Source: Oculina patagonica
Taxonomy: Eukaryota
DNA: 64,000 nt
Reading direction: 5' to 3'
Assembly: GCF_052425735.1 (NCBI RefSeq)
Contig: NC_135764.1
Span: 31,744,001-31,808,000, forward strand
This document shows, piece after piece, positions 36,110 through 61,533 of the stretch; the stretch's first letter is position 1, and each line of letters begins with the position of its first letter. The notes under the pieces are model-generated. The model was not told the DNA's origin. It saw only the letters and a program-made list of their open reading frames with translations, and did not search any database. Made by a program: the position numbers and the translations under genes.

Positions 36110-39075
36110 TTACTTTTTGCCCATGCAACACGTTGGTGCGCATGACGGAGCACAAACTGGCATTGGGGGAGGGGGTGGTGGGGGAGGGAGCATAATTGGT
36201 TGAGGGGGTGCAGTGCAGCACGGCTGAGGACAGATTCTCATACAGTAGTGGATACAAACAGGTGGACATGCTGGCGGGGGTGGTGCTGGGAGACCGGGGC
36301 AACCGGGGGTTCCCATCGGTCCCATTGGTCCCATAGGTCCCATGCATCCTGGCATACCGGGGAGTCCACGACATCCAGGGAGGCCTGGGGGTCCCATGCA
36401 TCCTGGCTGGCCGGGAGGTCCTGGAATAGGGCAGGGGACAGGACAAGGTGGCGGCGGTGGTGGTGGAGGTGGCGGAGGAGGAGGGGCACAGCATGACGGT
36501 ACACAGGCCGGAGCACACGAAGCAGCGCATCCCAAACCACAGGGGTTTGCGTTACGCTTCTCTACAGTTTCTGTGAGTAAATAAAAGGAAGCAGATGAAA
36601 AATAAGGTCAAGACATGCTATTGGTAATGTATGGTCAAATTCAGTATTATTCATTGAACACTTGGCATTTGACACCCCTCGGCATTGGAGTTTGACTGGA
36701 AAAATTCCCCTTACTTTACCGTTGACGATTTAATTTGTATACACATGTAACTGATAGTGACGTTGCTTAGACTACAACGAAGGTATATGTTAAACTAAAC
36801 GTAACTGATTTTTAAGTAATTGTTTTTATATTTGTTAGCAGGTCATTTTACCTGGCTCATCTTCGACTTCTTTCGTTATTTTGACGATCTTTCCATGATG
36901 AAGGTAAGCCTCAGTAACTGTAAAAGTACAGGTTTAAACAATGTTAAAATGTAAAAGGTAAAGGTACACCTGGGTGGCGAGAGGCACTGTGAAAATTAAG
37001 CCGTCCTACTCAAGGACACAACAGACAGTGACTCTGGTCAGGGCGTGAACCCAGACCGTTCGGTCAGGAGTACAGTGGACTAACCATTAGTCAACTACGC
37101 CTCCCAATGTTTAAATACTTACGGCCAATTCTCTTCTTTTGTTTGACAGTTGAAATCTATGTGGAAGAGTTTCGAAATAACACTCAGAACGCGTTGAGAG
37201 AAATATGGGGCGAGTTATTCTGTGACGTCATGTCAACTGAATTTCTGTAGCAAGATATTTTCGATTCTCTGTTAGATTGTGATCGTGATTCCTGTAGCGA
37301 TTCCGGGTTCCTTTTTTTAATATTAGCTGTACCTTATTTCTAACTCATACTCATAATTCCGGCATCATAAACTATGATCTTTATCAGAACAGGTGTGCTT
37401 GAACACCTTTTCAAAAGGTGTTGTGCTGCCACTGTTGCGAACCGTTTAATTTAATCCAGGACGTGTAGAAAAGGCGTTACATCTCACACAAAAGTGTTTA
37501 ACCAGCCACAACTTACACGCCGTTCAGAAGAAACCTTCAAAATAGCTAGGGACAACTTTTAAGTTAGTGCTTAAAAGCACGTATTTGTTTGAGTTATTAC
37601 TGATTTCACAGTTTGTAGACCAAAACCCGGGGCAGAAACTTTTCAGCATGGGGTCTAAGAAGGTTTTACTCACATGGATACTGAAACAATGGTCGTCTCA
37701 GATTAAAGTTCGCTTCGCCAATTGGTGCGCGCTAATTTCACATACCACTGATTACTCTGGTATTGGCGACAGAAGGTATGAGTTCTCAGTGAATCCACTA
37801 CAGCGTATAATCACCGTGTATCCTTACTCATGGTACCCGCTTGTTAAACCAAACTATTTCGAATAACTCAAAGATGTCCTTTAAGTCTGTTTACTGTGAA
37901 CAAGAACCCTGCGAACGTGACCATCGAATCGCTAAACTCTTTTTGTGGGTTGCTTCTCAGATAGGCTTTAAAAAGATCTGCTTCTAGCTATTTTCTACGA
38001 AAGTCCACATAATTTGCAAATTCATGTTTTCTTTTCTTTTGTTTCTATCACCAATTTGGACACTACCGGTAATCCAGACTTGATTTCAACATTAAAGGCT
38101 TGCGTTTTTAAATCGCGTCAAGTTTTCTATTCGTAGTTACCAAATTGAACAAGCCGAATCTGAATCACAAAATCCATTTTTCAACCTAAGCAGTGTAATA
38201 CTAATGAGACGCAATATTTGGATTTCCCGAAGTTTTTCGTTTTGCAAGAAGTAGTACTGTTTAGTTTGTTTCAGTTTCTCGCCATTATAAAGCAACAACC
38301 TGTCCAAAAGTAAACATGATTCACTCACCGCGTATTCCAAAAGTTATTGCAAAGCTCTTAATATATCGGTATGACAACAGATTTTGGGCTCCAGAGAAAA
38401 CAGTAATTTTAACACAAGATTTCAGTCTATGACAAAATGATCTTTTCCCGGCTCTTTGCTAAGTCTTTATTTTTTCGGGTTGGGTACAGGTGTTAAGCGC
38501 ATAAACGCAACACCTGTTTGTTTCGATTTTATTGTTACAAGGAAAGTGTAATTATCTGCAATCACCTTAGATTCTAAACAAGATCAGATTCCAAATTAGA
38601 TTCTACAAAAAAGTCATTTTAATTCACAGAACGGCCTGATAAAATACTAAACAAATACGGCAAAATATATATACCGCCATCTACACTTTTCAGTAAAATA
38701 TCACAAGGCGAAATAATAAAAATGTCAACACTTGTTTTGTGCACAGACAAGAGAAAATGTACGTGGATAGCCGTCTCTTCGTTTTGCTAATCGTTTTCAA
38801 ATTACGTTTCTAAATTAGTTGTTCAATGTTTCTGCCGGCGCCTATCTCGAAAGAAAGTTTGATCTACGAAGAAAACCTAAAATGGATTGCATGTTTATGT
38901 CAATATACCAGTTAAAATCATTATATTGACATTTGATACCGTTTAGCTTTTCCAGCTGAAATCACAGAGATAAAAGGGATACATTTACTGGCCAGGATAA
39001 ATAAACAAACTAACCTTTCCGTGCTTCCAGCGAAGCAATAAAGAGGAATAAACAAGCAAGCGTTACTCGAAACAT
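36110..39075 (-). CDS. Ncol: Minicollagen (nematocyst wall protein), ~195 aa
   Basis: Exons 39075-39015 (signal MFRVTLACLFLFIASLEARK), 36917-36852 (propeptide, phase 1-1) and 36570-36110. Mature part: EKR^NANP, CRD CGLGCAASCAPACVPSCC, polyPro, 15 Gly-X-Y, CRD CPPVCIHYCMRICPQPCC, polyPro, short CRD CAPSCAPTCC. The upstream exons are less certain than the main exon. Confidence 0.9.
36955..37105 (-). mobile_element. tRNA-derived SINE fragment
   Basis: CCTGGGTGGCGAGAGGCACTGTG...CAAGGACACAAC...GGGCGTGAACCCAGACCG; B-box-like GGTTCACGCCC on the minus strand; similar to 44165-44415 and 57590-57810. Confidence 0.7.
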
Positions 39076-39664
39076 GACCCACGTCGCTCTGTGGAGGAAA
39101 ATAATAAAAAAGTTCTTGTTAATCGATCCGTGAAAAGCTTGCCACAATTCTGTTACACTTGGCTAACCATTGAAATAGATATTGCTTAAATTTTAAGGGT
39201 TATGTTTGTGAGTTGTAGTTTTCGTTCTCTCCTTAATTTTTGTCTAAAATTAAAACATATAACCATAAGAAATACTTATAGCTATCAAGAATAATCAATG
39301 CTTAAATCCGGTGCTCTTTTCCCGTCCTTATTTATGATTGATTTTTGTTTATTTTTCCTCCCCAAATTGTTCCAAAATGGAATCAACTTGACATTGTTTC
39401 AAGTTCATTCCATCGAACGCTTCTATAAAGTAAAAGGTTCAAAGAATTTCTTCCATCCAAAGTGACACTCTCTTATTGTTAAGGGAAGTTCGCTTCCAAA
39501 GAAGATGAAAGAGGTCACCTGCCAAACTCAACCGTCCGAAAAACCGTCTCTTTATTCAAGTAAACGAGTTGAAACAGCGTTAGACGCACCCGAAAAGCTT
39601 GGGTAAGAAATCTCTAAAGCACCCCCTTCAAAACAACAAGCAAAAACAGTGTCTATAATTTTAC

Positions 39665-40384
39665 CTTATTTTTTGGTGATTCCTTCGGTTGACAAAGTGC
39701 TGTCGAAAGGTCAAGTCGTTAAGCAATCCCTACTGGCAGGCGGTGCTCCTAGTGTCATCATATATTCATCGGAGGCGGACAGTTTACCAACGCAACCTGC
39801 CCCGGGGCGAGTTTCTGTCAACAGCATTACGTCATGTAACTCAACCCGCCGTCCCTCACCTCGGATGTCCTCTGATTGGCTCGTTTAAGAAACGCAACGC
39901 AAGGAAAATCAGGTTGAAGCTAAAGAAACTATGTTTCGGGTTTTATTTATCTTAAGCGAGCGCTTTGTAAGATTTTTGGCCTCTGTGAAACGCTCAAATG
40001 AAGCGCGAATGGCTGAGGTCTCGGGGGATCAATTATTAAAACCCGTAGCTACCAAGCAAACGATAAAACCACACATTTTTTCAACCAATGCTCTTTCGTA
40101 TTTTGTCGACAGTCAGAGCAAATATTTTGTCTCACAGTGACAAGCAAAGCAAATTATTTATCGAACTCCACATGAAGGAAATCTTTGTTCTTTGTTAGGT
40201 AATAACTGTCAAAGACTGGCCATTCATGCGTTAAATTCCCCGAGCAGCGGCTATTATGTAATTCTTGGCTCAACATCATGAATCATTCACGAGTCGACAA
40301 AAATGGGAACAAAAGCAGACACTAAAAGTCCCAAATCCTAAAACCCTTACCCTTGAGTTGAAACAGGACAAATCAAGCAAACAG
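39665..40384. promoter_or_regulatory. Putative shared bidirectional promoter and 5' UTR exons of the two minicollagens
   Basis: Both ATG-bearing exons begin with splice acceptors, so 5' UTR exons must lie upstream. Candidate donors AG|GTAAAA (minus, 39665) and CAG|GTAAGA (plus, 40384); TATA-like 40252 with Inr TCATTC 40283; CCAAT box near 39875; TTACGTCA near 39827. Motif inference only. Confidence 0.35.
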
Positions 40385-42044
40385 GTAAGAAAGTTAGCAA
40401 AACTTAGTTCTCGATTTTGCTTCGCACTGCTTCGATATCGTGCGATGAACACTTTGACCAAAAACAACCTGTTATTTAGCTTTCTAATCGTGTTGTGTTT
40501 TTCTCTCAAGTATAAACAAAAGCCAGATACAAAATTTCTTGTTTTGGGCTCGGCGATAATACTGATACTTATTTGTTTTAGTTACAGCAATCATGATATA
40601 ATTGTTTCATGTTAAAAAGTGTCGAAGCTAAATGTAAATCTTAGCAGAAGATTGTTTTACTAACAATCTGCTAGCTCCAGTGGCGTTGTATCTAGTCTTC
40701 TAGTCTTCTGACCTTTGAAGTAAATTTTTTTTAATATATGCTTCGAAGATTAAACTGACTCCCTCAGAGTGAATAAAAAGGTCGTATATTTTAACAACTA
40801 GAAACTTGGAACTCACGCTGTTAAGTATAATACAATTGAAACCTTCTCTTAGACGCTCAATTCAAAGGAAAGCCTCACTATTTGTGCTATTGATTTTAAG
40901 GGAGCTATGTTACAAAATTCTGCCTACAAATAAAAGGAAACCTCAAAATAATAGTTAATTAAGGTAGAAATACACCAAAGGGATAATAATTAACCAAAAG
41001 GTACAAGGATGATCAAGACTGACGTAGGTTGAGAAGGGTCTCAAACCACGACGGGCTTGAAAATTTTGGCTAACTTTTTTGAAGAAGCGACATTCGAGAC
41101 GTGGCTTCCTAAACACTACACATGCAGTATATATTACGAAGCATTTTGTTAAAAATGACTATAAAATCAAGATCAACAAACAATTTAACTCTACAATCCC
41201 AAAGCTTAAATTTGAATCCTCCTTACTGAACTCGATACATTTGTTTTGTTGTAAGTTCAGAGAGTTTCGTAGTACATCAAGAATTTGATTTTCTTTGCTT
41301 TCGTTTGATTGTTGTGTACGAACCAATGCATTATTGTCATCGAAGGAGGAAAGGAGGAAATCAGGAAGAAGGGGGAAATCAGATCGTACTTAAAAAATTG
41401 TGGCGTAAAAACACTATTGAAAACGGAAATTTCTGGGGATTTTTAGGACAAAGGAAGAATTTGTGATTTTTTAAAGGAGAATTTCTAATTATTTAGCCTT
41501 ACTGAGTTGGCAGTTAACTGGTATTTGTATTATTCAACTGACATGAGTTGAACAGAAACCTGTTGCTAAACAAAAGCGAACCACTGGATACCAACAATAG
41601 ACAATATTAGATTTTGAAACTGAGTCACATTGAACTTTGCTATGTATGCGACCATTGTAGTATCTAGGCGTACTCTCCCTCCCCGCGGTCGAGCGCGACG
41701 ACCACGTTAGGGTCTGGGAACGGTTTGCGTGTCGTTAGTTTCGTATCGGTTGCATACTACATTCTGTCACCGCGTCGTGAGATTTCGCGCCAAATCGAGT
41801 TAGTGAGATGGCACGCCTGGGTACTTGTTTGGCATAACGGAAAATAACGCATTGTTGGTTTTCCCACTGCTCAGCCAATGGGAAACTGAGTTAGTCTACG
41901 AGGCGGAATAGTACCTCGGTCAGTAACATGCACGTGCGGATTGACTGAGAATTCTGGAAATCCGACAAAGTGCTGGCGTATTCAGCACGGCTGACGCATT
42001 TGATGACAGTCCTATAATAAGTTGTCCTTATTTTCTTTTCAGAT

Positions 42045-42849
42045 ATGGACTTAAGAATTCTTCTTGTATCTTGCCTTGTGGCAGTAGTATGCGGAAAATC
42101 AATTGGTAAGGAATCACTATATTGTTTTTAATTACTACTTCTTCTTGAGGATGTGGAGATTCGTAGGACGTTCAGGAGAAAAATGCAACACTACGATAAG
42201 TTAAACTAGCACAGTCAAACATCGCTTTACGGACACCCAATTGATGCAGTGGTTTTGGTTCCTTCCTCATACATTCTCTTACTTTAACTCTTTTTAAGCG
42301 CACGGCTCGCTAAAATGGACATTTCTGTGGTACCTACGGTGCTCGTTAAACGAGATCTTGCAAAATGTGTAACTTCACTTTGCTGTTTACCTTGCAGATG
42401 AAAAAGAAAAGCGAGAAGCTAACCCTTGTGGTTATGGATGCCCATCAATGTGTGCTCCAACCTGCGAACCAACATGCTGTGCACCACCACCGCCACCACC
42501 TCCACCACCATGCCCCGTCCCCGTGCCTATGCCAATCCCCTGCCCACAGCCAGGACCCCCCGGACAGCCAGGATGCATGGGACCACCCGGACTTCCCGGA
42601 TGCCGTGGATTCCCCGGCATGCCCGGATGTATGGGACCAATGGGACCGATGGGACCACCAGGAGCACCCGGATGCCCCGGTCTCCCAGCTCCACCCCCAC
42701 CACCGTGTCCCCCAATCTGTATTCACCACTGTATGAAGATTTGTCCTCAGCCATGCTGCTCTCCTCCACCCCCTGTGTATATCCCTCCTCCTCCTCCCCC
42801 TCCAATGCCAGTTTGTGCCCCATCCTGTGCTCCCGCCTGTTGTAAATAA
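42045..42849 (+). CDS. Ncol: Minicollagen (nematocyst wall protein), 170 aa
   Basis: Exon 42045-42105 (signal [20 protein letters not shown], donor G|GTAAGG) and exon 42398-42849: DEKEKR^[25 protein letters not shown], polyPro, 15 Gly-[23 protein letters not shown], polyPro, [11 protein letters not shown]. Confidence 0.95.
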
Positions 42850-43284
42850 GAAGTGAAAGATTCAGAAGAAACGTTGACTTTTGAACTTGTCCTGTAGATA
42901 GAATAACAACATTACTTTAGATTCAATTGTTATGAATCAAGAGACTGCTTATTTTCGTATTCAGTTCTTTTATTGACTTCGAATGGGAGTAAGACTGTTT
43001 CTTGTATGAAAACGCCATTAAATGTTAGTTTCCAATAACTTGTTATGTAATTCTTGTGGTTACTCGTCTTTGAAATCATGATGCTTGTATAAGTCACATG
43101 GATTTTACGACCTGTCGCTTAATCCTCGTGCTTTTAAACAGTGAACATAAACTCGAGAGCACTCGGAGTCTAGACATTGAACATTCATTTTTCATAATAA
43201 GCAAAATTTGTTTAAGTTAATCTTCAGTTCTTTTTTTTTATTGATTGCTCACACATTTACAATCATTACCTTAACAGCGTTATT

Positions 43285-45010: not shown

Positions 45011-45559
45011 TGTTTATTGACTTTATTAGCTTTCATCACTGTCACTGATAATATAATTCGCCGTTTTGAAATCTGTTTCTGCTCAAACTCACCGCTTTTT
45101 TGATTTCTGATCGCGAAGTCTTGCAGTTCGGCAGCTGCAATTTCTTGATTTTCCCTCTCTTCGTCTCCACAAGCTAGAAGCTCTTATAATTTATAATTTT
45201 CTTCTTCGTGTTAGCATATTTTCCTGCTCCTCAGTAAAACATTTTATTTTGGCTTCAGTGAACTTCATGAATCGATAGCTCGCCATTTCCAACCGGCGTT
45301 TGGCAGCCTTGCACAAACAACCGTGCAAAGGCGGGAAATGACGTCATCGATTTCGTCACTAGTGAGGATATGGGAAATAGGCCACTACAGTCCCGGATGC
45401 AGTTTCGTATGAATTTTACGAGTGGTCTATTTTCCAGTAAAACACTCGCGGCTATATAATAATAAACGATAAACAACTCAGCCTTCTTTTCAAACTATTT
45501 TATTTAGGAACAAAAACCTAACATGTTTAGGATAACTGTCAAAAACAGCGAAGGTTTAC

Positions 45560-46864
45560 TCAGTGAGTAATTTTGCTCTTTTTGTCTTGTTCTTTATCGT
45601 TGTCCTCATGGTGGTCTTCTTCTTTAGCTTTCTGTTCTTTCGTCTCTGTTGGGACGTGTGTCTCGCACCCTGGATACCCGCAGTTATTGTACCAGTAGTT
45701 GTATCCGTAGGGGTAGTGATACGGGTACGGGTAGTTGTAAGGGTAGTGGTGTGTGTCGGGGTGCTGTACAGTCACAGCTGGGTGTACAGTTACTGAAGCT
45801 GGGTGTACTACTGTTGTTGCGGGGTGCTGGACTGCTGGATGGACTGCAGGGTGGACTGCTGGGTGCTGGTATGGGTAAGGGTAATGATACGGGTAGCCGG
45901 GGTGTTGATACGGATATTGTCCGTAATGCCACGGGTATCCGGGATGTCCATATCCAGGGTAATAGACATCGTTGGATTGTCCTAAAAAATGAAAGAAACG
46001 GTTGTCATTTCACCTTTAGTTTACTTTACAGGGCTGCAAAAACCAGTATTCAACAAACGTTAGATAGAATATAATTGTTAAAATGGTGTGTGGTGGTTTT
46101 TTTTTTAATGCTTTCGTCATCTGACAGAAGTTGCGATGAATAAGAGAGTCTCGAACACAAGCAAGGGACCTGGGGAGAAGAACAGGTACCCGCCCATCGT
46201 ATTATTTCTCACTTCGCAGTTTTATAGGATTTTAGCTGCTTTGAAGGATAAAATAAGGATTTTTTTGTAATAAAGTATTCCTTTGGGCTTTTTTTTTGCA
46301 AAGATAAAATCAAGCACGCTTCTTTTTTTGACAAATTCTGTCGACTGACTTAAGGCCAAAACCAATCGGCCAGTGGCCAATCAGAACAAACGAAAATAAC
46401 ACAATTAACCAATTAAGTAACAGGGTACGTAGCGCGGGAAAACTGACAACCGGTGTCAGGCGTGCGAAAACATGTAACCAGTTTTAAGCGCGGGAAAACA
46501 CAGTTGGTTCTCGTTTGTATCTAATCGGATGAACAATTGTTTGGTTGCAGGGACTTTGAACGAGTTTTCTGACAAATTTAACAACTCAGCAATGACAAAC
46601 TCAAATAAAACATACGCTTATGCGTAGGTTTAACAATTATTCAATTCCTCTACAGTTGCAGCTTTTGCACTATCTTCTTGATATACCTTTCTTGTCTTGG
46701 TCCTGTTTCACTTCATCTGATTGGCTCTGAAAACTGACTTGCTGCGCAGACTCGGCGGGGTTAACTTGATTAGCATTAACCTCCAAAGAACTGAGAGCCC
46801 TGGACTCAACTGCAACGAAACACACCACTGCCAACAGGCAACCAATCACAACTGAAGTCCTCAT
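45560..46864 (-). CDS. Uncharacterised secreted Tyr/His/Pro-rich protein, 199 aa
   Basis: Exon 46864-46687 (signal MRTSVVIGCLLAVVCFVAVES, polar propeptide ending QDQDKK, donor G|GTATAT) joins exon 45981-45560 in phase 1 (600 nt total). Sequence: GQSNDVYYPGYGHPGYPWHYGQYPYQHPGYPYHYPYPYQHPAVHPAVHPAVQHPATTVVHPASVTVHPAVTVQHPDTHHYPYNYPYPYHYPYGYNYWYNNCGYPGCETHVPTETKEQKAKEEDHHEDNDKEQDKKSKITH*. AATAAA at 45504-45499; candidate UTR donor at 47778. Confidence 0.85.
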
Positions 46865-49706
46865 GTCTAAAACAAAACAAAAAAAACACAACCATCGATA
46901 TTAGCATTAGGTATAGATATAACGTAATTTATTAAACATGTTTTTAAGGGACAGCAGTGTCCCGGCTGATATATCTTATTTTAAAAGTATGACCGTTGGC
47001 TTGCTATAAACTTGCTTTATTATCTTGCAATAGAAAGAAAGAAAAACACCCTGAATGTGGTGAAAGCAAAGAAATCTCAACTTAAAAGAAAAATGGATAC
47101 GTAATGATTAAAATATTCAGAATTTCCTGAGAATGAAAGTTTTGATTTTTTCTCATCCTGACACAAGATCAAATTTTATGAACTGTAATCCACTTCCATC
47201 CTTGCAATCCTATACTTCTTCCCCAAAATATTTGTTCTATTTTAAGCATTCAATATTTTCTTGTTTAAAATCTATTGCAGCGCAGCCGAGATGGAAGTTT
47301 TTGCTTACAGTTCTATACATCCACCAATATCGACATTTAAAATAACTACATTACTAACTAAAATATTAATTTTACTGGTAGTGACAGGGATCAGACTATA
47401 ATTGAAGATATTTTGGAAAAAACTGCTACGAAATAGGAAATTAAATAGATTATAAATATAATTAGTACTCGCGGACAACTTGATTCGCTTTTTAAAAATT
47501 ATTTAGACAAGATTTTTTAAAGGCTATGAACACGTATGCTATTCGAAAAGAGGTAGTGAAACGGCGGCTCATAGAAATATATTTACCTTCCCTTGTTAAG
47601 CATTTTAAAAAAAAGCTAGTTTGAAAAGCCTACAAAAACTGCTTGATTCAAACTTTGGACATCAGCTGAAAAATAGGCACTCGCTACGATACACTTATGG
47701 TTTCTTACTGAAAAATTACACGACTCTATTTTTATTATCCGAACGTAGAATGATTTAAAACAAGAAGCTGAACTTACCAATTCCTTTCTACCTCCGATAC
47801 GCTTCTACTGCGAATTCCAACAAACTCTGATGAATGTCTTTGATTGATAGGAATTTAAGAAATAATCACACACCCCTACTGAAAAATAAAGCCCTTTGAT
47901 TGGCTTATTACTAAGTATTATGTCAACTGAAAATTGTGAACGCGTGAAAAGACAAGCGATCACTGACGCCTGCTGTCGATGAGGACACAATTTGTTTGGT
48001 GTCTAACACTTGAAACGATAAACAAAATATTTGTTAACGAACACACCCAAACATCAAAAAAGTGTTGAATAACTCACGGATTTTGTTTTAATTTATCAAC
48101 TGTATTAATAAAATGTTTGTTTTGAGTAGAACAATAAAGATTAGGCATATCACGTTCGAAATGAAAATTCGATTTATAAATACACGTATTTTAAAGGTAT
48201 ATTTTAATTTGACATACTTGTAAAGCAGGAACTAAGAGGTCATTTGATTAAGTGACCTCTCTAAAATGCCTGGGCCTTTGAAAATTAAATTTAACTCAGA
48301 ACTGACAAAAACATAAACAATTAGAACAGAAAAAAAAGCTGTTCTGCAATGCTTGTAATTTCGGGTTGAAAAAGCTAGAGATAAGAGTATGAAGTTATAA
48401 CACCATTGAGGAGATTCGTAATTTTAGTGACAAAACAGGTTTTTCGCATTCCTTACGTCGATGTGAAGGAAAAGGTTGTTGCTTGTATTAAAATTTCCAA
48501 ATGTGCTTCTTTCTAATTTTAGGAAAATTTATAGTGAACACAATCAATCAAATGTTGTGGCTCGCATTTTAAAAACGAAAAAACCAATTTACTGCTTCAA
48601 ACCAGAAAACTCCCAACAGAAAAAAGAACATGAACAAAGAACAGTGATTATTACAAACATAAATAAGAGATTTTTATTTCTGTTTTGTGTTTGGATTTTG
48701 AATATTTTGCTATAAAGTTATTGCCCTTTTATGCGTTTAATTAAATCTTACTAACTATGGTCCGACGAAAGGCTAACGTTCTAAATATCCGCCACGCTTG
48801 TTAATTTACGTTTAGAATTTATTTCCCTGCCAGTGAGATAAAACAATTCAGTTTTTTCTAAATTTTATAATATTTCTCAATTAATGACTGAGTTGTTTGT
48901 ACGGCCAATGGAGAAACCACAACTTAGAGAGAGCCTATGTGAAAGATAGTCTTCCATATTTAGATTGAACAGTGAACAGCTTATGGTCGGAAACGGCCGT
49001 GTATTTGAAAGGCCCCATGCACTTGTCACCCGCGGGGTTTGTCCCGTTCAAGATCACGACCACAAGCGGGACATCCCTAAATTACGGGTTTGACATACTT
49101 TGTGTGAAATCTCCAAACGTTCGTACACAATGAAATGAACTGTACCTTGACAAACAATTTTTATTACGCACAATTTACTCCAAGTAGATAGCAAAACAAA
49201 AAACATTAGTAATCAACACAATAAATTCTTAAATAACAAAATGCAAGCAACATGGCACGTTTGTGACAACCAAAGTAGCATAAGAGGGCTATCAGATTCA
49301 CAAAATTTATTGAACATAACGCCCTTGCCTGGATTTTTAACGTTTTACTAAGCAGTTATTTACAAGTCGTTAACCACTAAAATAAAATCAAATTTTTGCA
49401 CATTAAGTACAATGTTACGTTAATGAATATTTTAAAATTTATTCACATAGTGCTCGACAAAAAGAGCAAAGGACTTTACAGGGGTAAAAAATAACTTGAG
49501 CGACGCCCTTTCAGGGGTTGGATTTAAATTTGCCAACGAGCACGCACCTCCTTTTCATAAAAGAGTCCACCCCCTCTCCCCAAACTCGGAATTAAAAAAA
49601 ACCATTTTGTGAGGCAAGTTATTGATACCCAACCGTCATAAAACTGTTTTCGACAAATAAACAGCAATTCCTTAAATATCACTGATATGCAGTGACATAT
49701 TTCTTA

Positions 49707-50196
49707 TTCTTACTAATTTTCGCGAGTACTAATTTTAGCGATATTCGCGATTTCAAAATAATCGCGAATTTAATACGCGCGAATATAATATTGCGCGAAA
49801 TTTAAACACGCGAAATTACTTTATATCAAAACAAAAATTTTAAATGTTTGGAAATTAAACTATCTATCCTTGAAAATATCTTTCCGTCTTGTTTTAGACT
49901 AGCACCCTTTCTCTGATTACTGTTTTCTTTAGCTTGTAAATCGGCCAAGACTTCTTTAGTACAGTCACCGAAGTTTCCAATTGTAGGCTTCGTGTACAGT
50001 ACTTACATTGAACCCGGCCTTTGTATATTTCCAGTAGTTCCTTAGTCTTTGACGACTGATCCAGAATACACTGGAAAAATCGCGAAATTTAATACCCTCT
50101 TGCTTTAATTTTTCTTGCCATCGCGAAAATTAATACTCGCGAAATTCGGCTCCCAAATTTTCGCGAAATTAAGTACGCGCGAAAATAAGTAAGAAC
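49707..50196. mobile_element. MITE with CGCGAAATT subterminal repeats
   Basis: TTCTTACTAATTTTCGCG ... CGCGAAAATAAGTAAGAA; many TCGCGAAA repeats at both ends. Confidence 0.7.
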
Positions 50197-50230
50197 ATAT
50201 TTACATTAGTAAGTAGAAATATCAAGGGAA

Positions 50231-52517
50231 TTAATAACTGTTTGTAGTAGGGGGAGACCAGTATTCCATTTCCTGCTCTTGGCCCTGTGAGGTATTGAAG
50301 CACTGCAGGAGCCCATTATGTGCTCCTGAGCACTGGCGATAGAAGTAGCTATTAGGAACTTCCATGTAAGCACTCTGTGGTGCTGTATTTTCGATGTAGT
50401 GCGGCATAGAGACTGGCATCATACAGGTCGTTTTATTCACTGTGGATTCCATCTTAAGCCTCAATCGGTACCGTTTATTCTTGAACCAGTTCTATAAGAT
50501 AAAAACACAGCTACATTCAGAATAAACGTTGTAGGATGCTCGACTCTGCAACATGCTGCAAGAATACACGTTTGCATTTTGCGCCCGAGGTGTGAAATGT
50601 ATCAGGTATCATCCCTTTTTCATGTAATAAAGAACTTTACCTTACTGCATAGCAGGAAATTACAAACCTGTAGCACTTGCTTTGTTATTCCCAGTGCAAC
50701 AGCCACCTCCGTCTGCTGGATGGGGGTCAAGTAAGGTGACGACTCAAACGCTCGCTTCAACACTTGTTTCTGATATTCACTCAATCTTGTGCGTGTTTGT
50801 CTCTTTGAGGAACAAACAGTGACCTGATCTGCGGCCTCACCTTTAAGGAAATTCATTTCAAAGCATAAATTATTTTGTGTAGCTTGCGACATAATCATCT
50901 CCTAATCTCTTATTAGGGAAGAACCATTAGAAATAACCGGAGGGGGGGGGGGGGGGTAAAAAATTTTCCGTGCAGGAATTTTTTTTGAAGGCCTACTTGT
51001 CTGCAGGAATTTTTTTTCTGAGGCACAAGCTTTGCACGAATTTTTTTTTCACCCAAAAATAAAGGTCTTGTTTTGTAACGCATCTATGATTTGCGCAACA
51101 ATTATCATTATTAAATAGCATTATTGTTTCATTTTTTCAGATTCGTTCTATGAATTAAGCGACATTTAGGGACCGTTCATTTTTTATGCCATAGGTAGGG
51201 GAGCTGAAGGGATTTGATAGATAGTGCCTGTTAAATATAATCCCCCCTCCTTATTAGAAATTTTTACCCTAGTCCCTCAACAAAAAAGATGACAGCTAAA
51301 ACCTATCAAGCTAAACTTTAGAATATCAGACAAAATTGCAGTTTAAAGTGATAATAATAATACTGTTTGTGCTTTTGGTTAACTGTTTACTGATGGGACG
51401 CGATTGTTAGGGTGGGTCATATGTGTTTGCAACCAAATTAGTTGATAGGATTCAGCTGATGCTGTTCTCTCGGTACATGACAAATTAGAGGGGTCCGGGG
51501 GCATGCTCCCCCGGGAAAATTTTAATTTTCAGAACCTCAGAAACGCTATTTTAGCCATTCTGATGGACGTTTATAGATGCCAACATACAACACTTACAGG
51601 TTATTCCGTTGCACGAATTTTTTTTCAGGCACAACCGCTTGCAGGAATTTTTTTTCGACAAGTTTTCCTTGCAGGAATTTTTTTTTGGTAAAAGTCACCC
51701 CCCCCCCCCCCTCCGGTTATTTCTAATGGTCCGTCCCTTAGAATATTAGATGTGTTCTTGGGTTAGGCGAGTGTGAGTTTAAATCAAATCAAATCACATT
51801 TTATTTTAAACACATAACACCAAGGAGTACGTAGATTTCTCGTTTGAATGTGTACAAGTGTCTAAAAGTAAAAATCAATTTTTATTTCAAAATTTAAAAC
51901 GATGAAAATTATTATCGATATTTATAATTAATATTTACAAGTAAATATTTAAAATATATAATAATATAAAAGTCGCAAATTACAGGTACTAAGCTTTAAG
52001 CCATGTAGGCTTTAAGAGATATTATTTGATACTTTTGCACTGACGTCTCATCAAACGAAGACAATTTTTAATTATTTTTACATTGTATAAGTATACTTTT
52101 TTTTACATTACTGATTTAAAAAAAGCATATGTTAAGGTCAATCGCACGAGGACGCAACTTCATCTGAAATTGGTTTAGTCAAATCTGCTTAAAAGAATTC
52201 ACGCCGCTCACTAAAATATTATGTAATGCTATAGAAGACAGAGAGAAATTCTCCAACACGTGTCAGTGAATTAAGTAAATTGGGATAACGCTTGCGTATT
52301 TTAAAGTACCATCGAAATGGGTGACAGAAAAACAAAGGTTGTTTTATCGTGAAAAATATTTGTTTTTCTATGCTGATTTCCTAAAATAAATCAAAATTCT
52401 TTGCTAGTTTGGATGACATAACTAACCTGACGATGCGTTCTGGTCGAATAGTTGAGCATCATCTGAACTGGAAGCACCTACATTTACAGATAGTGGCCGT
52501 TTGGAACATTCTGCCAT
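50231..52517 (-). CDS. Divergent K50 homeodomain transcription factor (PRD-class-like), 174 aa
   Basis: Exons 52517-52427 (MAECSKR..., donor G|GTTAGT), 50840-50668 and 50491-50231 join in frame. Homeodomain KRQTRTRLSEYQKQVLKRAFESSPYLTPIQQTEVAVALGITKQVLQ|NWFKNKRYRLRLKM with R5, L16, F20, W48, F49, K50, N51, R53; phase-0 intron between residues 46 and 47. Confidence 0.88.
50916..51737. mobile_element. PIF/Harbinger-type MITE (TTA TSD) in homeobox intron 1
   Basis: TTA|GGGAAGAACCATTAGAAATAACCGGAGGGGG ... CCCCCTCCGGTTATTTCTAATGGTCCGTCCC|TTA; subterminal TGCAGGAATTTTTTTT repeats. Confidence 0.88.
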
Positions 52518-53791: not shown

Positions 53792-55149
53792 TTATGTCTT
53801 CTGTTTGCAATGTGACGTCACAGCAAAATCAATTCAATCCCTATTTTCGGATTGAAACTGAAATTTTGGAAAATACTCACCCCTTGAGTGATTATTCAAG
53901 ACGTATTAAGAAATATTAATTGTACCGGTCAACTTTAGTGACCAGGCATAAAACAGTGGACGGTCATTTTGGTTCAAAATATCTCGCTGTGGAAAGTTCG
54001 CCGAAGCTAAGCCGACGAGTTAGAAATCATCGGGGACTAATTGTCATCGGCATGACAGATCAGCCATATTAGGGGAGTGGGGAAAGTGAATTTGATCCGC
54101 GCAAGTATTTCCACCGGGGTGTACCCATAGGTAGAAATTCTCCTTTGACGTCATGGTGTGAAACCGGCCTCCCGCAGTGGGGGTGGTGGTGGGGGGACTT
54201 GGGTTCGCTCCGGTAAGTTGTGTACTTGTTCATATTACTGGGGGGAAACAAACATCAAACGGTGTTAATATCATGAACATGTATCTTTAATAGATCTACT
54301 GTATTTTTATACAAAAGTTCTTGTTTATCAAAGCACTTGCATGTATGCTTTAAATATATATACAGACCTAACAGTTCTGCTTATAGAAACTTTTGATGGT
54401 CAACATATTGGAATTCATAATCGATTCCAGAAGCTATTTGCAGACGTACATTTATACCTTTTCCATCAAGCTAGCCCATTTATGATTCTTACAAGTGATA
54501 TTTAACGTGCTGTGTGTTTCATGACAAAGAGATATTTACATATATTTATTATTTATACATATTTATTTTTTACATATATTTAGTATTTATATTTCGGACA
54601 AAGTGTCTTTTTGAGACAAGAAATTAACGAAACTGGACGAAATTTAACATTTATCAGGGCCCACATTGATAAAAGTTGAATGTATAACTGAAGTGTCCGG
54701 TCCTGTATAAATATTTCTTTTTATTATTATTGTTTACCTGGATTATTCTGCTCACTAAAGGAAACGTTTTTCAACTCATAGAGGTAAATTAAAAAAAAAT
54801 CTATGTTTACGCATGACTGTTTGAATATGATTGAGTTTCGACAATAAACTGTCACAAGAGAGGAAACATTGTCTATTTGTTGTAAAATCTAACAAAGTTG
54901 CTCTTGCCCTCGGATCCGCAGATACTCTTGGGTAGTTTCGGTGGCAAAAAGTGCTATTTTAGACCTGTTGTTTAGAACTTGATGTACGCTATTTTGTTAA
55001 CTAAATCGCAATTTACTTAATCTTGCGATATCTGTTATTTTATTTTCTTGGCCTCTTCTACATTTGAATTTTAATGTCCTTTCGGACTAAACGGCTCAAA
55101 AGCCACGCGCTTTTGGAAGGCAAATAACTACGTAACTTACATACGCGAC

Positions 55150-55770
55150 CACCCAGCGAGCAGAGCCCTTTCTTTTCCACTGAGAAGAAAGGGCTCTGCA
55201 AGAATCGCGTCAAATCTTTGTTGAGCATGCGCGAGGTTTACGCGATGCTTGCGCATTTAGCTTGCGCGAGGAACACTTAATCTTAGCATGCGCGCGAGAA
55301 ATGGCGTGATGGATCGTACACGACAGTGTGAAAAAGTGTTTGTTTTACAAGTTCTTTTCTTCGGAGAGCATCTGAATTCCTTTAGTAATAACACGTCAAG
55401 CAGCGCTTGAAGTCGTATTAGTGACTTTATGGTAGAGATGTGCGATTTTAACCGTGAAATTTCTTCTTGCCTTGCGAAAAAACGAGAACTTAAATGATCC
55501 ACAACCTGCACGCGCGCACAAACGTTAGCAGATGGCGAGAGCAATCGTCAGCTCTAGTGCTTTCGAGAGCGTACTGTGGGCTCCGCCTTGAACATCAGTT
55601 TTTCCAAAAAATTAATGCCCGCGCAGCAAAAACCGGTTTAATCCGGGCTGACCAGCCCAAACTTTGGGGCTGCGGCGACTTCAAAGAAATGACACGATTC
55701 ATGCAGAGCCTCTTTCTTCTTCCTAAATCTCAACCGCAGGGAAGTTAAAAGAGGCTCTGCTCGCAGGGTG
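55150..55770. mobile_element. MITE with 9-bp TSD
   Basis: ATACGCGAC|CACCCAGCGAGCAGAGCC ... GGCTCTGCTCGCAGGGTG|ATACGCGAC. Confidence 0.85.
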
Positions 55771-55822
55771 ATACGCGACTAGCCCCAGACCTCTTATGCT
55801 CACGGTCATAACAGTCACCAAG

Positions 55823-58800
55823 TCAATTTAATTCATATTTCTTTGTCTTGGAAGTGTGTTCCCGCAACAGCCAGTAGGTTTGCATTGTACCCTTTCCCTG
55901 GAAAGAGAAATAAAAAGGATATAAGAGACTTTTGCAACCACAAGGGTTTTGTGGAAAGAAGTAATTGTACGAGTTAAGCTTTTTGATGAAATGGGACGAG
56001 ACACCTGGGATCATCAGGTTAATACGTACGAGGAGGAATATTAGCGTATTATTCATACGTGTTTCAAAAGACTTCGTAAAGAGACGGTTGCGGCACATTT
56101 TTCGAGGGAGGGGTACCTTAAAACGTGAGTGGGAAAAAATGTGTTTTTATAAAAATAATTTCAGTATTCACGGTGTCCCGTCGAGCTTCATTATTTAAAG
56201 TCACTTACGTTTGGCCGAGTCATGGCTTGTATTGCTCACTATCTGGATTGCTTATTGCTTTTATGGTCCTGTAGTGAATTTGTCTTAAAGACTGTGAAGT
56301 TTTATCCCCTTTTAAGTTGTTTATAAAGGGCAATTCAGTTTGTTGAGACAACCTCGAATACGACACGTAACATATAATGTTGAGGATAAAGAAGACCAGG
56401 AATATATTAACACCACCCCTCCCCCCTATACAAATGGTAAAAGTCGCTAAGTATCTTGGGTGGGTAAAATAAAAAGTACGAGGTTCGGTTTCGTCCGCCA
56501 TATTGGATATGTAGTTTTCTCTCTTTATACGAGCGTGCAAATTGCGTTCTTCCTTCCCTCCGGCCGGCAACAATAACACGCGTGGTGCTGCAGCCGTGGT
56601 TTCGGTGCGAAAATTGCTTACTTTTTCTTCGTGAGTGTCATAAAAATTACCTTATCCATTTTGACGATTTTCCTATTTTACATTACAGTTGTAGTTTTGA
56701 ATATTTTGGTTGGGAAAACAAAGCTGGAGCTGGCATTTTTCTTAAACTGTCCAAGCTGATATGGTAGGATACTAGTTAGCAGGTTAGGGACTTGATATCG
56801 TCGATATCGACCAGCTGGTCAGCAGATAGAGCTTCTGATTGGTTGATTCTGAATTTGGGCACGGTGAACTGGTTAAGCTAACACATACCTTGACTTCGAC
56901 AAGTCCTCTAAACTCTAGAGCGTAATCACCCAGAAATGTCAGCATATCCTTTGAATCTTTGCTAACATGGATTCTCTGAGCTAAACAAAATGCAAAATTA
57001 CACAAATTTAAAATTTGGTCAATTTAAGAAAAGATTATAATGGAATACGGCAATTTTGACTGATGCCATTGTTGACATATCAAATTTAAAACAAAATAGA
57101 AATTCATCTGATTTAAAAACTGTTTTAACTGGAAAGAACATGCAAAAGTATTATGATCTATGTTTAAAGGAACAAGTTCAAAATCTACTTTATGATCAAA
57201 CAAAAAATGCTTATGAAATCAAACAACACCACTTTAAACAAAAGTCACCAAATATGACACAAGACCATACGGTACTAATACTTACGCATGCCCGTTGTTT
57301 GCATTCTCGAGGCGGTATTCACAGTGTCACCAAACAAACAGTAGCGAGGCATTTTGTTTCCCACAACTCCCGCCGCGCAGGGGCCTGGAACGAAAAAAAA
57401 AACACAATTAATGCGATTACCTCGTAATCACGCGCGATCTCGCATACTAACGACTGATAGTAAACAAGTAGCTTAACCAGTCAGATTGTCGGTTTGCATA
57501 AGTATACTAAAAGAATTCTACTCACTAAGTTAAGTTTAGTTTCAATCCTCTTCTAGTCTAACGAATTGGAAGGGTCACGTGACTGTGTAGCATGAATCGA
57601 CTAGGAGTATTACTACTCCTCCCTGGAAGGGATGGGCTGTCAGGCTTCCCTTACAGTTCACTGGTATCCATTTATATACCTGGGTGGAAAGAGGCACTGT
57701 GAGAGTTAAGTGTCTTGCCCAAGAACATGACACAAGCACCCTGACTAGGGCTCAAATCCAGACCGCTCGATCCAGAGTCCAGCAGGCTAATCAGAAGTCT
57801 ACCATGCTTTCTTCAAGGGGAAGTTCATTCCAGAATGGCACTTTTGTTATTCGCGCCAACTGAACGAATAGGTAATACCAGAAACCCATAAGGGTTGAAA
57901 CGTGTAACTCCATATGATTCGCATTGTACAAAGCGTTTGCACATTCGTTTCCATTAAGTACCATTTTTGGAAAATCAGAAGAAAAAATTAACCAATCAAA
58001 ATTGCATCATTTGAATTAAATTCACAGCGCGCGCTAGCTCGCGCTCAATGGCGTAATCTTGTTTTTGAACAAGCTTGGTTGAATAAAGTTAAATTTGGTT
58101 AAATTCTTCTGTTTCATCTTCTTGAAGTAGTCTGGAGAACTTCGCTTCGATACACTTAATGTATTTCTTTAGTTTCTGTAAGAAATTTACGGTGTTTAGG
58201 TCGAAATTCAAGCAACTTACCGTAAAACCAAAAATTATGTTGCGTGTGTCATTACGTGTATGAAGCATTCGCGTACAAATTCTTCGTGTTTCCAAATATG
58301 GTACTTAGCAAAATGAATATTCAAACGCTGTGCGCGCGCGTTACACGTTTCCACCCTTATGGGTTTCTGGTACAGTCAACTCTCTCTAAGACGGACACCT
58401 TTGGGACCGGCCGCAGCTGTCCGTCTTAGAGAGGTGTCCGCTCTGTAGAGAGTCGAGGTATCATGACACCAGTAATTCTGAGATAATAAAGCTAAACCTT
58501 TGCACAATACAACAAACCTTTGCTAACTGCAACAAGACTAAAATAATAAAAGGAGCGTATTTGCTTGTTAAAGCAAAAATTGAGAGCTGTAATACAAACT
58601 GTAATACTGTAAGTAGAAAACGACCTCTTTAGTGTCCATACACGTAAGCAGAGAAGAAATCCGTTAAAGCGTCATCAATTATGGTTAGTAAGCTTGGTAT
58701 ACACGTATCCTCTGGGCGCCGACTAACTTTACTTTAGGTCGATACGATGTTTGGAAGTATTTTCACTGGTAAAACATACATACATACATACATACATACA

Positions 58801-58940
58801 TACTTTATTTAACGTGGAAAAAAGTACACACTTAGCTGTTAGCTAGTTTACAGGTGCTCCACGATTAAAAGTTTAGTATTTACAAAAGTATTTACATCAA
58901 AACAAAGGGTATAAAAGTATTACATCAGACTATTTTAAAA

Positions 58941-58976
<36 letters not shown>

Positions 58977-61533
58977 AACAAACAAACAAACAAACAACAA
59001 CACCATCTAGCTAAATTAAGATTCCTAAAAAATATATATATATAAATATAAAAATCCTATCTAAAAGCGATAAAATATAATTATTAAACATTGAAATCAG
59101 TTTGTCTAATCTTTTTCAAAAAGTCCTTTGAGCCTGCCATGGAACGAATATCACGAGGTAGCATGTTCCAGTGCTTTGCTGCAGCATAACGCCACGACTT
59201 AAGACCATATCTGGTAGTGTTCACTTTAGGTATGGAAAGATTAAAATTACCGCGAAGATTGTACGCTGTTCTCTTTTCAGTTATAAGATTTTTGAAGCTG
59301 GATGATAAAAAACACTTCTTAAGTGTCCGTTTATGATTTCAAAGTGTCCGTTGTCCGTCTTAGAGAGGTGTCCGTCTTATAGGGAGTTTGGTTACAGTAA
59401 AATGACTGAAAAACGGCAGGGACCATCACCAGGTGTCCGTCTTATGGAGGTGTCCGTCTTATAGAGGTGTCCGTTAAGAGAGAGTTGACTGTAATACAAA
59501 GATACATTACTCACCAAAATTTCAGCTTCCAAAGAGTATGAAAACCCTATGAAATCCTTGCCTGAAGTAGTCGAAAAGTCGAGAACCAGCCGCCGCCATC
59601 TTGGAGTAACTTAGCAGCCTGGCGATGTATGTGTGACGTCAAAGATCTCAATTTTTGCTATCAGTCTTGGAGTTCAGTTTGTGCAAAATGATGCTGCACA
59701 GAACAGGCATTTCGAAAAACAAGCCAATACAAAATTAACAAGGAATGTCAAGTATTTAAACAACTTCCTGCCAAACGTCAGATTGAACTCTTTGACATCG
59801 CACGTACATCGCCAGGCTGCTTAGTTACTCCAAGATGGCGGCGGCCAGATCTCGATTTTCGGATTACTTCAGACAAGGATTTCATAAGGTTTGAATACTA
59901 TTTGGAAGCTGAAATTTTGGCGACAAACATATCTTGGAATTACCTTTTCGTTGGCGTGAAGAAAAGAAGTGCCATTTCGGAATGAACTTCCTCTTTAACT
60001 GTCAAATCAATTTGACTTACCGGTGTGAATCCCGATTCGTACACAAAGATCCCGATCACCGTCGGCGCCAAAACGAAAGCTCTCCATGAGCTCAACTAAA
60101 TGTAGCGCCATCAGTGCTATCTCGGTGACGTGACGGTGCTCATTTTTCTCTGGAAGACCTGATACCACCATGTAAGCGTCACCAATCGTCTCTACCTTAT
60201 AGACGTCATATTTGTCTATGTGGTTGTCAAAGATTCCATACAGTCGATTTAACATTTGTGTGACCTCCATGGGAGAAATGTTGGCGCATATTTGTGTGAA
60301 GTCTACAATATCGCTGAAGAAGACTGTCACGCTTTCAAACTGCTCTGCTGTCACGCTATGGCCGCCCTTCAACTGTTCTGCTACCGGGTAAGGCAGCATT
60401 TGATAGAGAAGAGAGTCCGCTCTTTGCTTTTCTTCCTTCAGCTCTTTCGTGGTTTGATGAAGTTTGGCCGCAAAGCGTTGAATCGTGTATATAACATAAA
60501 CAAAAAATGGCATTAGTAATACAATGAAACCAAAAATGCTGAGCTTAAGAATCCAGTCATTTTCGGTGGTGGTGACGTCATTCTCTAGTCTTTCAAGGAT
60601 CACATTTCCGGCTTCACGTTGTACGTCAAGTAATGCGTCTATGTAAGTAGTCATGAAGTGAAACCACTGTCTACCAGATTCCGCCGAGGCATTTTGTTTT
60701 TTGTTACTCAAAATGATGTTCCTTCTTTGTTCCACTTCAATTAATACCGACATATTGTGGGATTCCACAGCTTTTTTGTAAATTTCTTTAATTTCGGGCA
60801 TTAACTGCATGCTAGAGTTTAATTTCTCCCTTCCCAGCAAATTGTTCTCCGTGAACCAAAGTAGCTCTTTTAATTCACCGAATTGTCCTCGAATGAAAAA
60901 CGCACCACCAAGAGCGCGTTCAATCCCTGTCTTCTCTTTTCCAATAAGAAGCATTTGGTAACCAATAAATTCTGACAAAACGTCATGGTCGATCTGTTGA
61001 ACGTTGCGGAATAACCAGTCAAACAGGTTTGAAATAATCTCTGAGTAAAATATGATCTCGTCTCGGACTGTACTGTTGTCGACGCTATGTGAGATACGAT
61101 GACTATTGACAAGCGCCATAAAAGTTTCCAGGCTGTTAAAGTTATATCGATCCAATTCGGCCTCAGGCCACTTTTCGAGACTTCTGGCGTGCTTGTCCGT
61201 GTTATTTCCCGCTTCTAACACCTTTTGCCGTACATTGTGATCTCTGCCAGAACTCGCAAGCAAGACTCTTGTTCCGCGCTCAATTTGTAGCGTATGAATA
61301 AGACCAGCAACCTCGATGCTTAGTTTAACACTGTTTTGCAGTGTTTTCGATTTTAAGGCGCTTGCGCTCGCTTTTAGTGTGTCTAATATTGTAAGAACTG
61401 TTAAACCAGTCATGGCAATCAAACACAGGCCGGTCACCACAACCAATCGGAGCCGTCTGTGTCTTCGAGTGATCCTTGTAGGCACCGGTGTCAGTTGAGG
61501 GCTTGCATCAATTGGCTGTATTTTGCTCTTCAT
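55823..61533 (-). CDS. NIT-GC: NIT-domain (nitrate/nitrite-sensing family) membrane guanylyl cyclase, ~592 aa
   Basis: Exons 61533-60021, 57384-57286, 56980-56889 and 55897-55823 (1779 nt, in frame). TM1 [21 protein letters not shown]; NIT motifs [10 protein letters not shown] and [11 protein letters not shown]; TM2 [23 protein letters not shown]; helix [14 protein letters not shown]; cyclase [56 protein letters not shown] with the GTP-selective E and C. An acceptor 18 nt above the ATG means the N-terminus could extend upstream. Confidence 0.92.
57590..57810 (-). mobile_element. tRNA-derived SINE fragment
   Basis: AGCATGAATCGACTAGGAGT...CCTGGGTGGAAAGAGGCACTGTGAGAG...TCTTGCCCAAGAACA...GCTCGATCCAGAGTCCAGC; same family as 44165-44415. 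Confidence 0.7.
57878..58370. mobile_element. TA-flanked MITE (nested)
   Basis: TA|CCAGAAACCCATAAGGGTTGAAACGTGTAAC ... GTTACACGTTTCCACCCTTATGGGTTTCTGG|TA. Confidence 0.85.
58373..59491. mobile_element. Tc1/mariner-type MITE (nested; itself interrupted by a LINE fragment)
   Basis: TA|CAGTCAACTCTCTCTAAGACGGACACC ... GGTGTCCGTTAAGAGAGAGTTGACTG|TA. Confidence 0.85.
58775..59305 (-). mobile_element. 5'-truncated CR1-group LINE 3' end with (TATG)n tail
   Basis: Minus-strand translation [71 protein letters not shown], a typical ORF2 C-terminus; AATAAA followed by a (TATG)n tail. Confidence 0.8.

Follow-up and report, generated by a model that had tools for sequence, protein, structure and literature searches.

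Minicollagens are capsule-wall proteins and known stinging-cell genes, with the Ncol minicollagens of Hydra and Nematostella as the described counterparts to which the genes reported here are compared. In the Stylophora cell atlas minicollagens are used as cnidocyte markers (PMC8162421), and spinalin, a nematocyst spine protein of Hydra, was described as being rich in Gly and His (PMC10014300). Guanylyl cyclases that carry a NIT domain (NIT-GCs) form a family known from placozoans and many other animal phyla (PMC7400543), whereby Platynereis NIT-GC1 was found to produce cyclic GMP (cGMP) upon addition of a nitric oxide (NO) donor, a response which requires the NIT domain, and to act in ciliary photoreceptor cells (bioRxiv 10.1101/2023.08.02.551600). 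For cnidarians, NO was reported to be active in feeding and chemosensory behaviour (PMC7400543). The present work deals with a block of five genes of the stony coral Oculina patagonica, which is located at 36.1-61.5 kb of a 64-kb stretch of the chromosome-scale contig C7 (C7:31744001-31808000, hereafter the window, to which positions refer unless stated otherwise) and which consists, in this order, of minicollagen A, minicollagen B, a gene for a Tyr/His-rich protein (Y/H), a K50 homeobox gene and a NIT-GC. The genome of Oculina patagonica has a size of 529 Mb, and the window possesses a G+C content of 33-46% and a eukaryotic composition. The original prediction made for this DNA had proposed that the five genes may represent a co-regulated stinging-cell module. 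The balance of the findings tips slightly towards a more restrained reading, according to which they form a genuine, moderately old collinear stony-coral gene block rather than an established functional module.

The evidence carrying this reading comes from the comparison of the locus between species by tblastn and blastn. In Stylophora, scaffold 14 holds the homeobox gene, Y/H, minicollagen B and minicollagen A, followed by the same unrelated next gene as in Oculina, and hence is fully collinear with the window, while the Stylophora NIT-GC, XP_022808402, was identified on another scaffold, which breaks off 1.1 kb from the 3' end of the gene and hence is uninformative on linkage. In Orbicella, the homeobox gene, Y/H and minicollagen B are collinear, and no NIT-GC was found in the 10 kb upstream of the homeobox. 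The Desmophyllum locus comprises a second secreted Tyr/Pro/Gln-rich gene (YPQ, described below), the NIT-GC, Y/H and minicollagen B within 20 kb, with NIT-GC to minicollagen B falling within 11 kb; here the collinear alignment jumps from window position 55865 to 49195 across 485 bases, meaning that the homeobox interval is missing. As a consequence, the homeobox gene was reasoned to be dispensable at this place. Porites evermanni was found to retain the divergent minicollagen pair only, with neither Y/H nor a homeobox in the 10 kb beyond minicollagen B. In terms of the microsynteny check suggested along with the original prediction, the gene order is partly kept in Stylophora, Orbicella and Desmophyllum, and Porites has the minicollagen pair only within the 10 kb viewed. 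In robust corals from four families, Y/H and minicollagen B are no more than ~3 kb apart, and NIT-GC and YPQ belong to the same larger block at least in Oculina and Desmophyllum. Two further loci add little to this picture: on one contig (L010) a retroelement follows within 8 kb after the NIT-GC, rendering it uninformative on linkage, and the Tara scaffold bearing a Y/H homologue is too short to show linkage. Since the order shared with Stylophora takes in the unrelated next gene as well, its conservation alone cannot be taken as a sign of joint function.

Clean GT-AG models were built for all five genes, which were found at the places originally given for them, and the gene identities assigned earlier (two minicollagens, Tyr/His protein, K50 homeobox and NIT-GC) proved to be correct throughout, with Pfam matches being obtained for the minicollagens, the homeobox and the NIT-GC. 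Likewise, the description of the genes as consecutive was upheld for the interval between minicollagen B and the homeobox gene, where no further block conserved with Orbicella or Desmophyllum was identified, and Rfam revealed no RNA genes inside the block. What had to be revised were extents. Minicollagen A and Y/H had been rightly recognised as genes; the former was found to have three exons and to reach 39075, and the latter probably to have an extra non-coding 5' exon and promoter at ~47747-48082. For the neighbourhood as a whole the five genes stood, while its limits probably have to be widened to take in YPQ, which lies beyond the window (Table 1).

Table 1. Coordinates of the genes and conserved elements of the Oculina patagonica block; positions refer to the window unless a contig is given.
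Feature	Position	Strand	Exons and remarks
Minicollagen A	36110..39075	-	195 aa; exons 39075-39015, 36917-36852, 36570-36110
Conserved non-coding blocks between the minicollagen start codons	39755-39844, 40090-40342	.	candidate shared regulatory DNA
Minicollagen B	42045..42849	+	170 aa; exons 42045-42105, 42398-42849
Y/H, coding exons	45560..46866	-	199 aa; exons 46866-46687 (ATG at 46864), 45981-45560
Y/H, promoter and non-coding first exon (probable)	47747..48082	-	CCAAT box; 3' end is a splice donor
Orphan K50 homeobox	50231..50898	-	163 aa if start at 50898; exons 50898-50668, 50491-50231
NIT-GC (LOC144660849)	55823..61533	-	592 aa; exons 61533-60021, 57384-57286, 56980-56889, 55897-55823
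YPQ	C7:31838386-31838697 (window-equivalent 94380-94697)	-	second secreted low-complexity Tyr/Pro/Gln-rich gene

The core of the block is suggested to be the head-to-head minicollagen pair. Both genes matched Pfam Collagen above the cut-off of 27.2 bits (minicollagen A, 33.1 bits; minicollagen B, 33.2 bits), and a pattern search identified two full C-x3-C-x3-C-x3-C-x3-CC domains plus one half domain in each of them, together with 15 Gly-X-Y triplets between polyproline runs. The spliced models read as a hydrophobic N-terminus followed by a propeptide that ends in EKR before the first Cys-rich domain. In minicollagen A these elements are distributed over a signal peptide exon, a propeptide micro-exon and a last exon, which encodes, in this order, the KR site, the N-terminal Cys-rich domain, polyproline, the 15 Gly-X-Y triplets, polyproline, a Cys-rich domain, polyproline and a half Cys-rich domain. 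The micro-exon was found through its conservation, which amounts to 83-86% in Stylophora and Porites, and the gene is 82-85% identical to its orthologues by tblastn. Minicollagen B is 92-94% identical to its counterparts in Stylophora, Porites and Orbicella and 72% identical to that of Desmophyllum; its ratio of nonsynonymous to synonymous substitutions (dN/dS) of 0.03 indicates purifying selection, and a conserved TATA-like box is located ahead of it at 42014-42022. The Oculina pair thus resembles the Ncol minicollagens of Hydra and Nematostella in possessing a signal peptide, a KR propeptide, six-Cys domains at both ends, polyproline and a short helix of 15 Gly-X-Y triplets, but differs from these in its extra C-terminal polyproline and half Cys-rich domain and in having Cys within the collagen triplets. 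The start codons of the two genes point apart with 3 kb between them, and this head-to-head arrangement, including conserved intergenic blocks, was found in Oculina, Stylophora and Porites. In Desmophyllum, minicollagen B and the intergenic DNA are kept, and the available locus ends before minicollagen A. Going by this comparison of loci, the pair is an old unit which was retained in robust and complex corals. It differs from the clustered minicollagen loci known in its divergent layout around conserved intergenic blocks, which the present work describes for stony corals alone. Across the genome, the minicollagen-like matches found were confined to contig C7, where at least seven are located at 0.48, 23.96, 24.14-24.15 and 31.78 Mb, a count which represents a lower bound as 150 of 1346 candidates were scored; the search for minicollagen homologues returned two proteins only as a result of their low complexity.

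The third gene, Y/H, encodes a small protein made from two coding exons. The first of these provides the signal peptide together with a conserved propeptide that terminates in KK, and the second a mature part which is rich in Tyr, Pro and His (of its 139 residues, 23 are Tyr, 21 Pro and 18 His) and includes one CGYPGC motif and a charged tail. Transcript evidence was derived from contigs of public runs placed on window positions 45350-51349. Among these, one spliced contig bridges 45980/1 and 46686/7, leaving out a minus-strand interval bounded by GT..AG, and thereby confirms the Y/H intron, and contigs of the second exon reach word depths in the thousands in one run (X1), identifying a very abundant transcript. 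A splice acceptor resides directly before the ATG, and the spliced contig possesses 29 unplaced letters at its 5' end. In addition, the 336 bases at 47747-48082 are conserved, matching Orbicella with 80% identity over 339 bases and Stylophora with 73%, and the GT donor with which this block ends aligns in Oculina, Orbicella and Stylophora. Taken together, the acceptor at the ATG, the unplaced 5' letters and the donor-ended conserved block point to a non-coding first exon and a conserved promoter of Y/H ~1 kb upstream. Homologues are scarce, as only four were identified among 5.8 billion clustered proteins, one being Stylophora AWC38_SpisGene1856 / PFX33202 and the others coming from coral-type samples. 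The gene is single-copy in the Oculina genome and has a dN/dS of 0.11-0.13. A relationship to caseins was considered and rejected, since the nearest neighbours in a protein-language-model comparison are only disordered secreted proteins with sub-threshold scores of at most 0.84, which were regarded as compositional look-alikes. No entry for the Stylophora orthologue appears in the published skeletal proteome table of that species, an observation of little weight as the Tyr/Pro/His core is without tryptic sites; it weakly disfavours a role in the skeletal matrix. Among described proteins Y/H was likened by composition to spinalin and other low-complexity matrix proteins of cnidocysts, with which it shares being a small secreted low-complexity protein, rich in His and in aromatic or small residues and plausibly cross-linkable or hardenable, but unlike spinalin it is rich in Tyr, Pro and His instead of Gly and His, and its homologues were found in stony corals only. 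Y/H further resembles cnidocyst protein genes in combining one exon for signal and propeptide with a single exon for the mature protein. It is therefore pictured as a highly expressed, secreted, probably disordered protein with a conserved promoter of its own, which may share cnidocyte expression with the minicollagens; the chance that Y/H is made in cnidocytes together with these is put a little short of even.

The question of such shared expression leads to the non-coding DNA of the block. In blastn alignments, the intergenic DNA of the minicollagen pair shares 72-79% identity with Stylophora and 68% with Porites, and an 880-base match to Desmophyllum reaches 71%, whereby the larger of the two blocks listed in Table 1 (40090-40342) is recognisable even in Porites; the ~3 kb of partly conserved DNA probably serves both promoters. 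The 12-mer CAAATATTTTGT, which like TCAGTTGACAT was found post hoc by a shared-word search and whose window counts, as those of TCAGTTGACAT, do not exceed shuffles when one mismatch is allowed, has exactly two copies in 64 kb, at 48022 within the invariant portion of the Y/H promoter and at 40119 within the intergenic block of the minicollagens. Three copies of its 11-base core are present in the Stylophora locus of 21.6 kb: one lies in the promoter of Y/H, another in the intergenic block orthologous to that of Oculina, and the third precedes minicollagen B by 470 bases. The second motif, TCAGTTGACAT, was found in the Y/H promoter as well as in intron 1 of minicollagen A, and both motifs were regarded as leads only. 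The cAMP response element (CRE) palindrome TGACGTCA was considered as a promoter element specific to the block as well, and was set aside upon finding it scattered through the window.

A rival to the reading of a gene block with partial cnidocyte expression is that of a purely inherited order, in which none of the neighbours of the minicollagens is related to cnidocytes and Y/H and YPQ are secreted by another cell type as matrix, mucus, adhesive or cuticle-like proteins. It is an unlikely, if still substantial, alternative. The fact that unrelated flanking genes are collinear too is what would be expected from it, and so is the finding of Y/H homologues in stony corals only, whereas cnidocysts are pan-cnidarian; the casein-type neighbours of Y/H in the language-model comparison point in the same direction. 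These arguments meet with the cnidocyst-protein-like exon and propeptide layout of Y/H, its constant closeness (3 kb or less) to minicollagen B among the four robust corals, the absence of its Stylophora orthologue from the skeletal proteome table and the conserved motifs which its promoter has in common with the minicollagen intergenic block, all of which speak against a purely inherited order.

The homeobox gene poses a separate question, as its origin has to be considered apart from its location. Pfam identified a Homeodomain (32.9 bits) and no other domain in its product, whereby the first of the two exons encodes homeodomain positions 1-46 and the second continues with NWFKNKRYRL. Position 50 consequently is Lys (WFKNKR) and position 47 is Asn, with the intron falling between codons 46 and 47. 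An identical splice was found for Orbicella XP_020625099.1, a protein of 153 aa annotated as 'vent1-like', and tblastn matches were obtained at the syntenic places in Stylophora, where the gene is unannotated, and Orbicella. Using a query that held 46 of the 60 homeodomain residues, an exhaustive phmmer search of 1.8 billion representative proteins returned 13 matches at E<=1e-3, the four best of which are 62-86% identical and include one named protein, that of Orbicella, while the remainder are weak matches to multi-homeodomain proteins. No orthology to the named PRD-class K50 families (Otx, Gsc, Pitx, Dmbx) was recognisable by phmmer; an identity as Otx, Gsc or Pitx was hence set aside and the gene filed as an orphan PRD-like K50 gene. 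An engrailed-type relation was dropped as well, since the sequence search of the PDB gave a weak engrailed match only. With the PRD-class K50 genes and with PRD-like orphans such as Obox and Dprx the Oculina gene shares Lys50, the 46/47 intron and a short single-domain product, but it differs from the named K50 families in being without detectable orthology to any of them and in its Asn at position 47. The gene is single-copy in Oculina and its dN/dS of ~0.3 is the highest within the block, though still indicative of constraint. Its transcript signal is barely detectable and consists of one low-depth contig, which covers 50738-50842 and then departs from the DNA; possibly, an upstream exon is spliced in at ~50840 near a possible acceptor. 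In Stylophora (LSMT01000014.1, L001 3783-3935, minus strand) a second homeobox-like exon, 45% identical to the Oculina homeobox, is located 3 kb upstream of the orthologue.

Based on these properties the homeobox gene would be a fast-evolving lineage-specific regulator. Carried further, it could be a PRD-like gene which is confined to the lineage and serves early development or the germ line, comparable to the mammalian Obox/Dprx-type genes, which is merely lodged in the block. This proposal was judged rather improbable. It accommodates the small number of matches and the 62-86% identity of the orthologues, the comparatively high dN/dS, the loss from the Desmophyllum block and the faint transcript signal. 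A further hint comes from the nearest language-model clusters, 'oocyte-specific homeobox 6' (0.88) and 'divergent paired-related homeobox' (0.86), and these scores fall below the level of evidence and serve as leads only.

The exon set of the NIT-GC reproduces RefSeq XP_078377703.1 exactly (100% identity). Its product matched the Pfam domains NIT (76.8 bits, cut-off 24.9; residues 78-310), HNOBA (34.2 bits) and Guanylate_cyc (122.5 bits), which together with hydrophobic spans read from the sequence at residues ~29-51 and 325-348 yields a layout of transmembrane segment, NIT domain, transmembrane segment, coiled-coil linker and cyclase. The class III cyclase domain, as read in the full protein, possesses the guanine-specifying Glu and Cys, i.e., the residues that set guanine specificity at those positions. 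In these features, the TM-NIT-TM-linker-cyclase architecture and the Glu/Cys pair, the coral gene is like the placozoan NIT-GCs and Platynereis NIT-GC1 and NIT-GC2 and falls among the metazoan NIT-GCs. Going by Platynereis NIT-GC1, the only member for which a cGMP synthesis dependent on NO or nitrite was shown, it would be a membrane sensor for NO or nitrite that makes cGMP. It has a dN/dS of 0.11. Three NIT domains were identified in the Oculina genome, one in the window and two on contig C14; both C14 genes are located away from any detected minicollagen, so that the copy in the window alone resides near minicollagens. A maximum-likelihood tree placed this copy in a clade with scleractinian sequences only, those of Acropora and Montipora included, and grouped the sea-anemone NIT-GCs with the other scleractinian clade (support 93/92). 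This position in a scleractinian-only clade, apart from the clade of the sea-anemone genes, distinguishes the coral gene from its placozoan and Platynereis relatives. The Nematostella NIT-GC locus, which was compared too, holds no homeobox, minicollagen or Y/H within 10 kb of its NIT-GC; as the tree makes the Nematostella gene the probable orthologue of the other scleractinian clade, this finding was not counted against deep conservation of the block. In the literature, no paper was found that names the Stylophora, Nematostella or UniProt accessions of the block genes or reports an expression pattern for a cnidarian NIT-GC. Nematostella has been stated to have no NIT domain (PMC7400543); in its current assembly, LOC5517355 (OW051985.1) has a product of 651 aa in which NIT, HNOBA and cyclase domains are all present. 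As a further observation, a dispersed repeat of ~400 bases is located directly upstream of the NIT-GC start codon (window 61650-62050), of which at least 40 copies with 89-94% identity are spread over many chromosomes; the Desmophyllum NIT-GC is also preceded by three overlapping matches to this repeat (L018 9229-9531).

The most constant neighbour of the NIT-GC is YPQ, which adjoins it in Stylophora, on the upstream side there, in Desmophyllum and on one contig of a complex-type coral, where the NIT-GC is followed by a convergent YPQ. In Oculina, where the two genes are on the same strand, YPQ is located 33 kb further out than the NIT-GC, separated from it by ~30 kb of apparently gene-poor DNA. 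The YPQ product combines repeats of the QQPYP type with CYG-x-GC and CG-x-PGC motifs, and its Lys-rich tail closes with HH. Paralogy of Y/H and YPQ was considered, as tblastn without composition correction gave E ~1e-9, but composition-corrected BLASTP yielded no alignment. A kinship of the two hence is only a suggestion, drawn from their common layout, the CG-x-PGC motif and the Lys-rich tail ending in His.

Considering the block as a whole, the homeobox gene and the NIT-GC are, by default, most likely functional bystanders under purifying selection which were kept by general coral collinearity. In Desmophyllum the homeobox interval is missing and the frame of the NIT-GC is broken in the assembly, as three net +1 insertions relative to Oculina are present in its exon 1 (Desmophyllum pertusum MU825404.1, L018 9697-11183), close to codons 109, 295 and 357, and the annotated product is truncated to 408 aa. 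Together with the Stylophora collinearity into an unrelated gene and the location of two of the three NIT-GC genes on another chromosome, these findings favour the bystander interpretation, and the Desmophyllum locus weakens the case for membership of both the homeobox gene and the cyclase in a module.

Several points weigh against this restrained reading of a collinear block and have to be set beside it. The frame breaks of the Desmophyllum NIT-GC reflect either a pseudogene or an assembly error. The linkage of NIT-GC, Y/H and minicollagen survives in Desmophyllum and is even tighter than in Oculina. With three loci for NIT-GCs and five or more for minicollagens in a genome of 529 Mb, a NIT-GC would be expected within 20 kb of a minicollagen by chance at ~0.001, a crude value which assumes a uniform model and gene families chosen post hoc. 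Finally, the two exact motifs of 11-12 bases shared by the Y/H promoter and the minicollagen non-coding DNA hint at a common regulation.

That all five genes form one module is nevertheless improbable, and the same low rating applies to the full form of this idea, in which the five genes and YPQ would be co-regulated in stinging cells as capsule wall, hardening protein, local transcription factor and discharge-tuning NO/nitrite cyclase: what it gains from the linkage kept in several robust corals, the improbable adjacency of NIT-GC and minicollagen, the shared short motifs and the involvement of NO in cnidarian feeding and chemosensory behaviour (PMC7400543) is offset by the loss of the homeobox interval in Desmophyllum with Y/H and minicollagen B staying in place, the three frame-breaking insertions in the NIT-GC of this species, the lack of a NIT-GC within 10 kb upstream of the Orbicella homeobox and of Y/H or a homeobox within 10 kb of the Porites pair, the published Stylophora cnidocyte regulators, which are Pax4/6, Six1/2, Pou4 and Fos and not the orphan homeobox (PMC8162421), and the site of action of the sole function-tested NIT-GC, Platynereis NIT-GC1, in ciliary photoreceptor cells. 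A variant in which Y/H and YPQ are hitherto unrecognised, stony-coral-specific structural proteins (hardening or matrix) of cnidocysts or spirocysts that share minicollagen regulation, and the NIT-GC embedded between these two genes is a cnidocyte membrane sensor of NO or nitrite setting discharge readiness via cGMP, was given equally slim prospects. If true, a cnidarian NIT-GC would for the first time be assigned a cell type and a function.

For the collinear gene block as favoured here, the present value lies in the corrected gene models and the conserved divergent minicollagen pair with its candidate shared enhancers, as well as in Y/H as a very highly expressed secreted protein confined to corals and in the orphan K50 homeobox. 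Should the block turn out to be a cnidocyte regulatory unit, it would be a compact example of a novel cell type assembling lineage-specific effector genes and would offer a candidate hardening protein as well as a function for a cnidarian NIT-GC, which would be the first.

Further features of the window were recorded beside the block genes. Multi-copy repeats are located at 45350-45460 and 49550-50350, where contigs from all four of the four runs pile up and continue into unrelated sequence; because of the multi-copy nature of this DNA, the pile-ups were not read as expression of the neighbouring genes. The first part of the window (1-25000, plus strand) is occupied by very long, Ser-rich, repetitive mucin-like open reading frames of up to 1055 aa. 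Inside a Ser-rich mucin-like gene region, a Type I hammerhead ribozyme was identified at 28274-28318 on the plus strand (Rfam RF00163, 37.7 bits as compared to a gathering threshold of 34).

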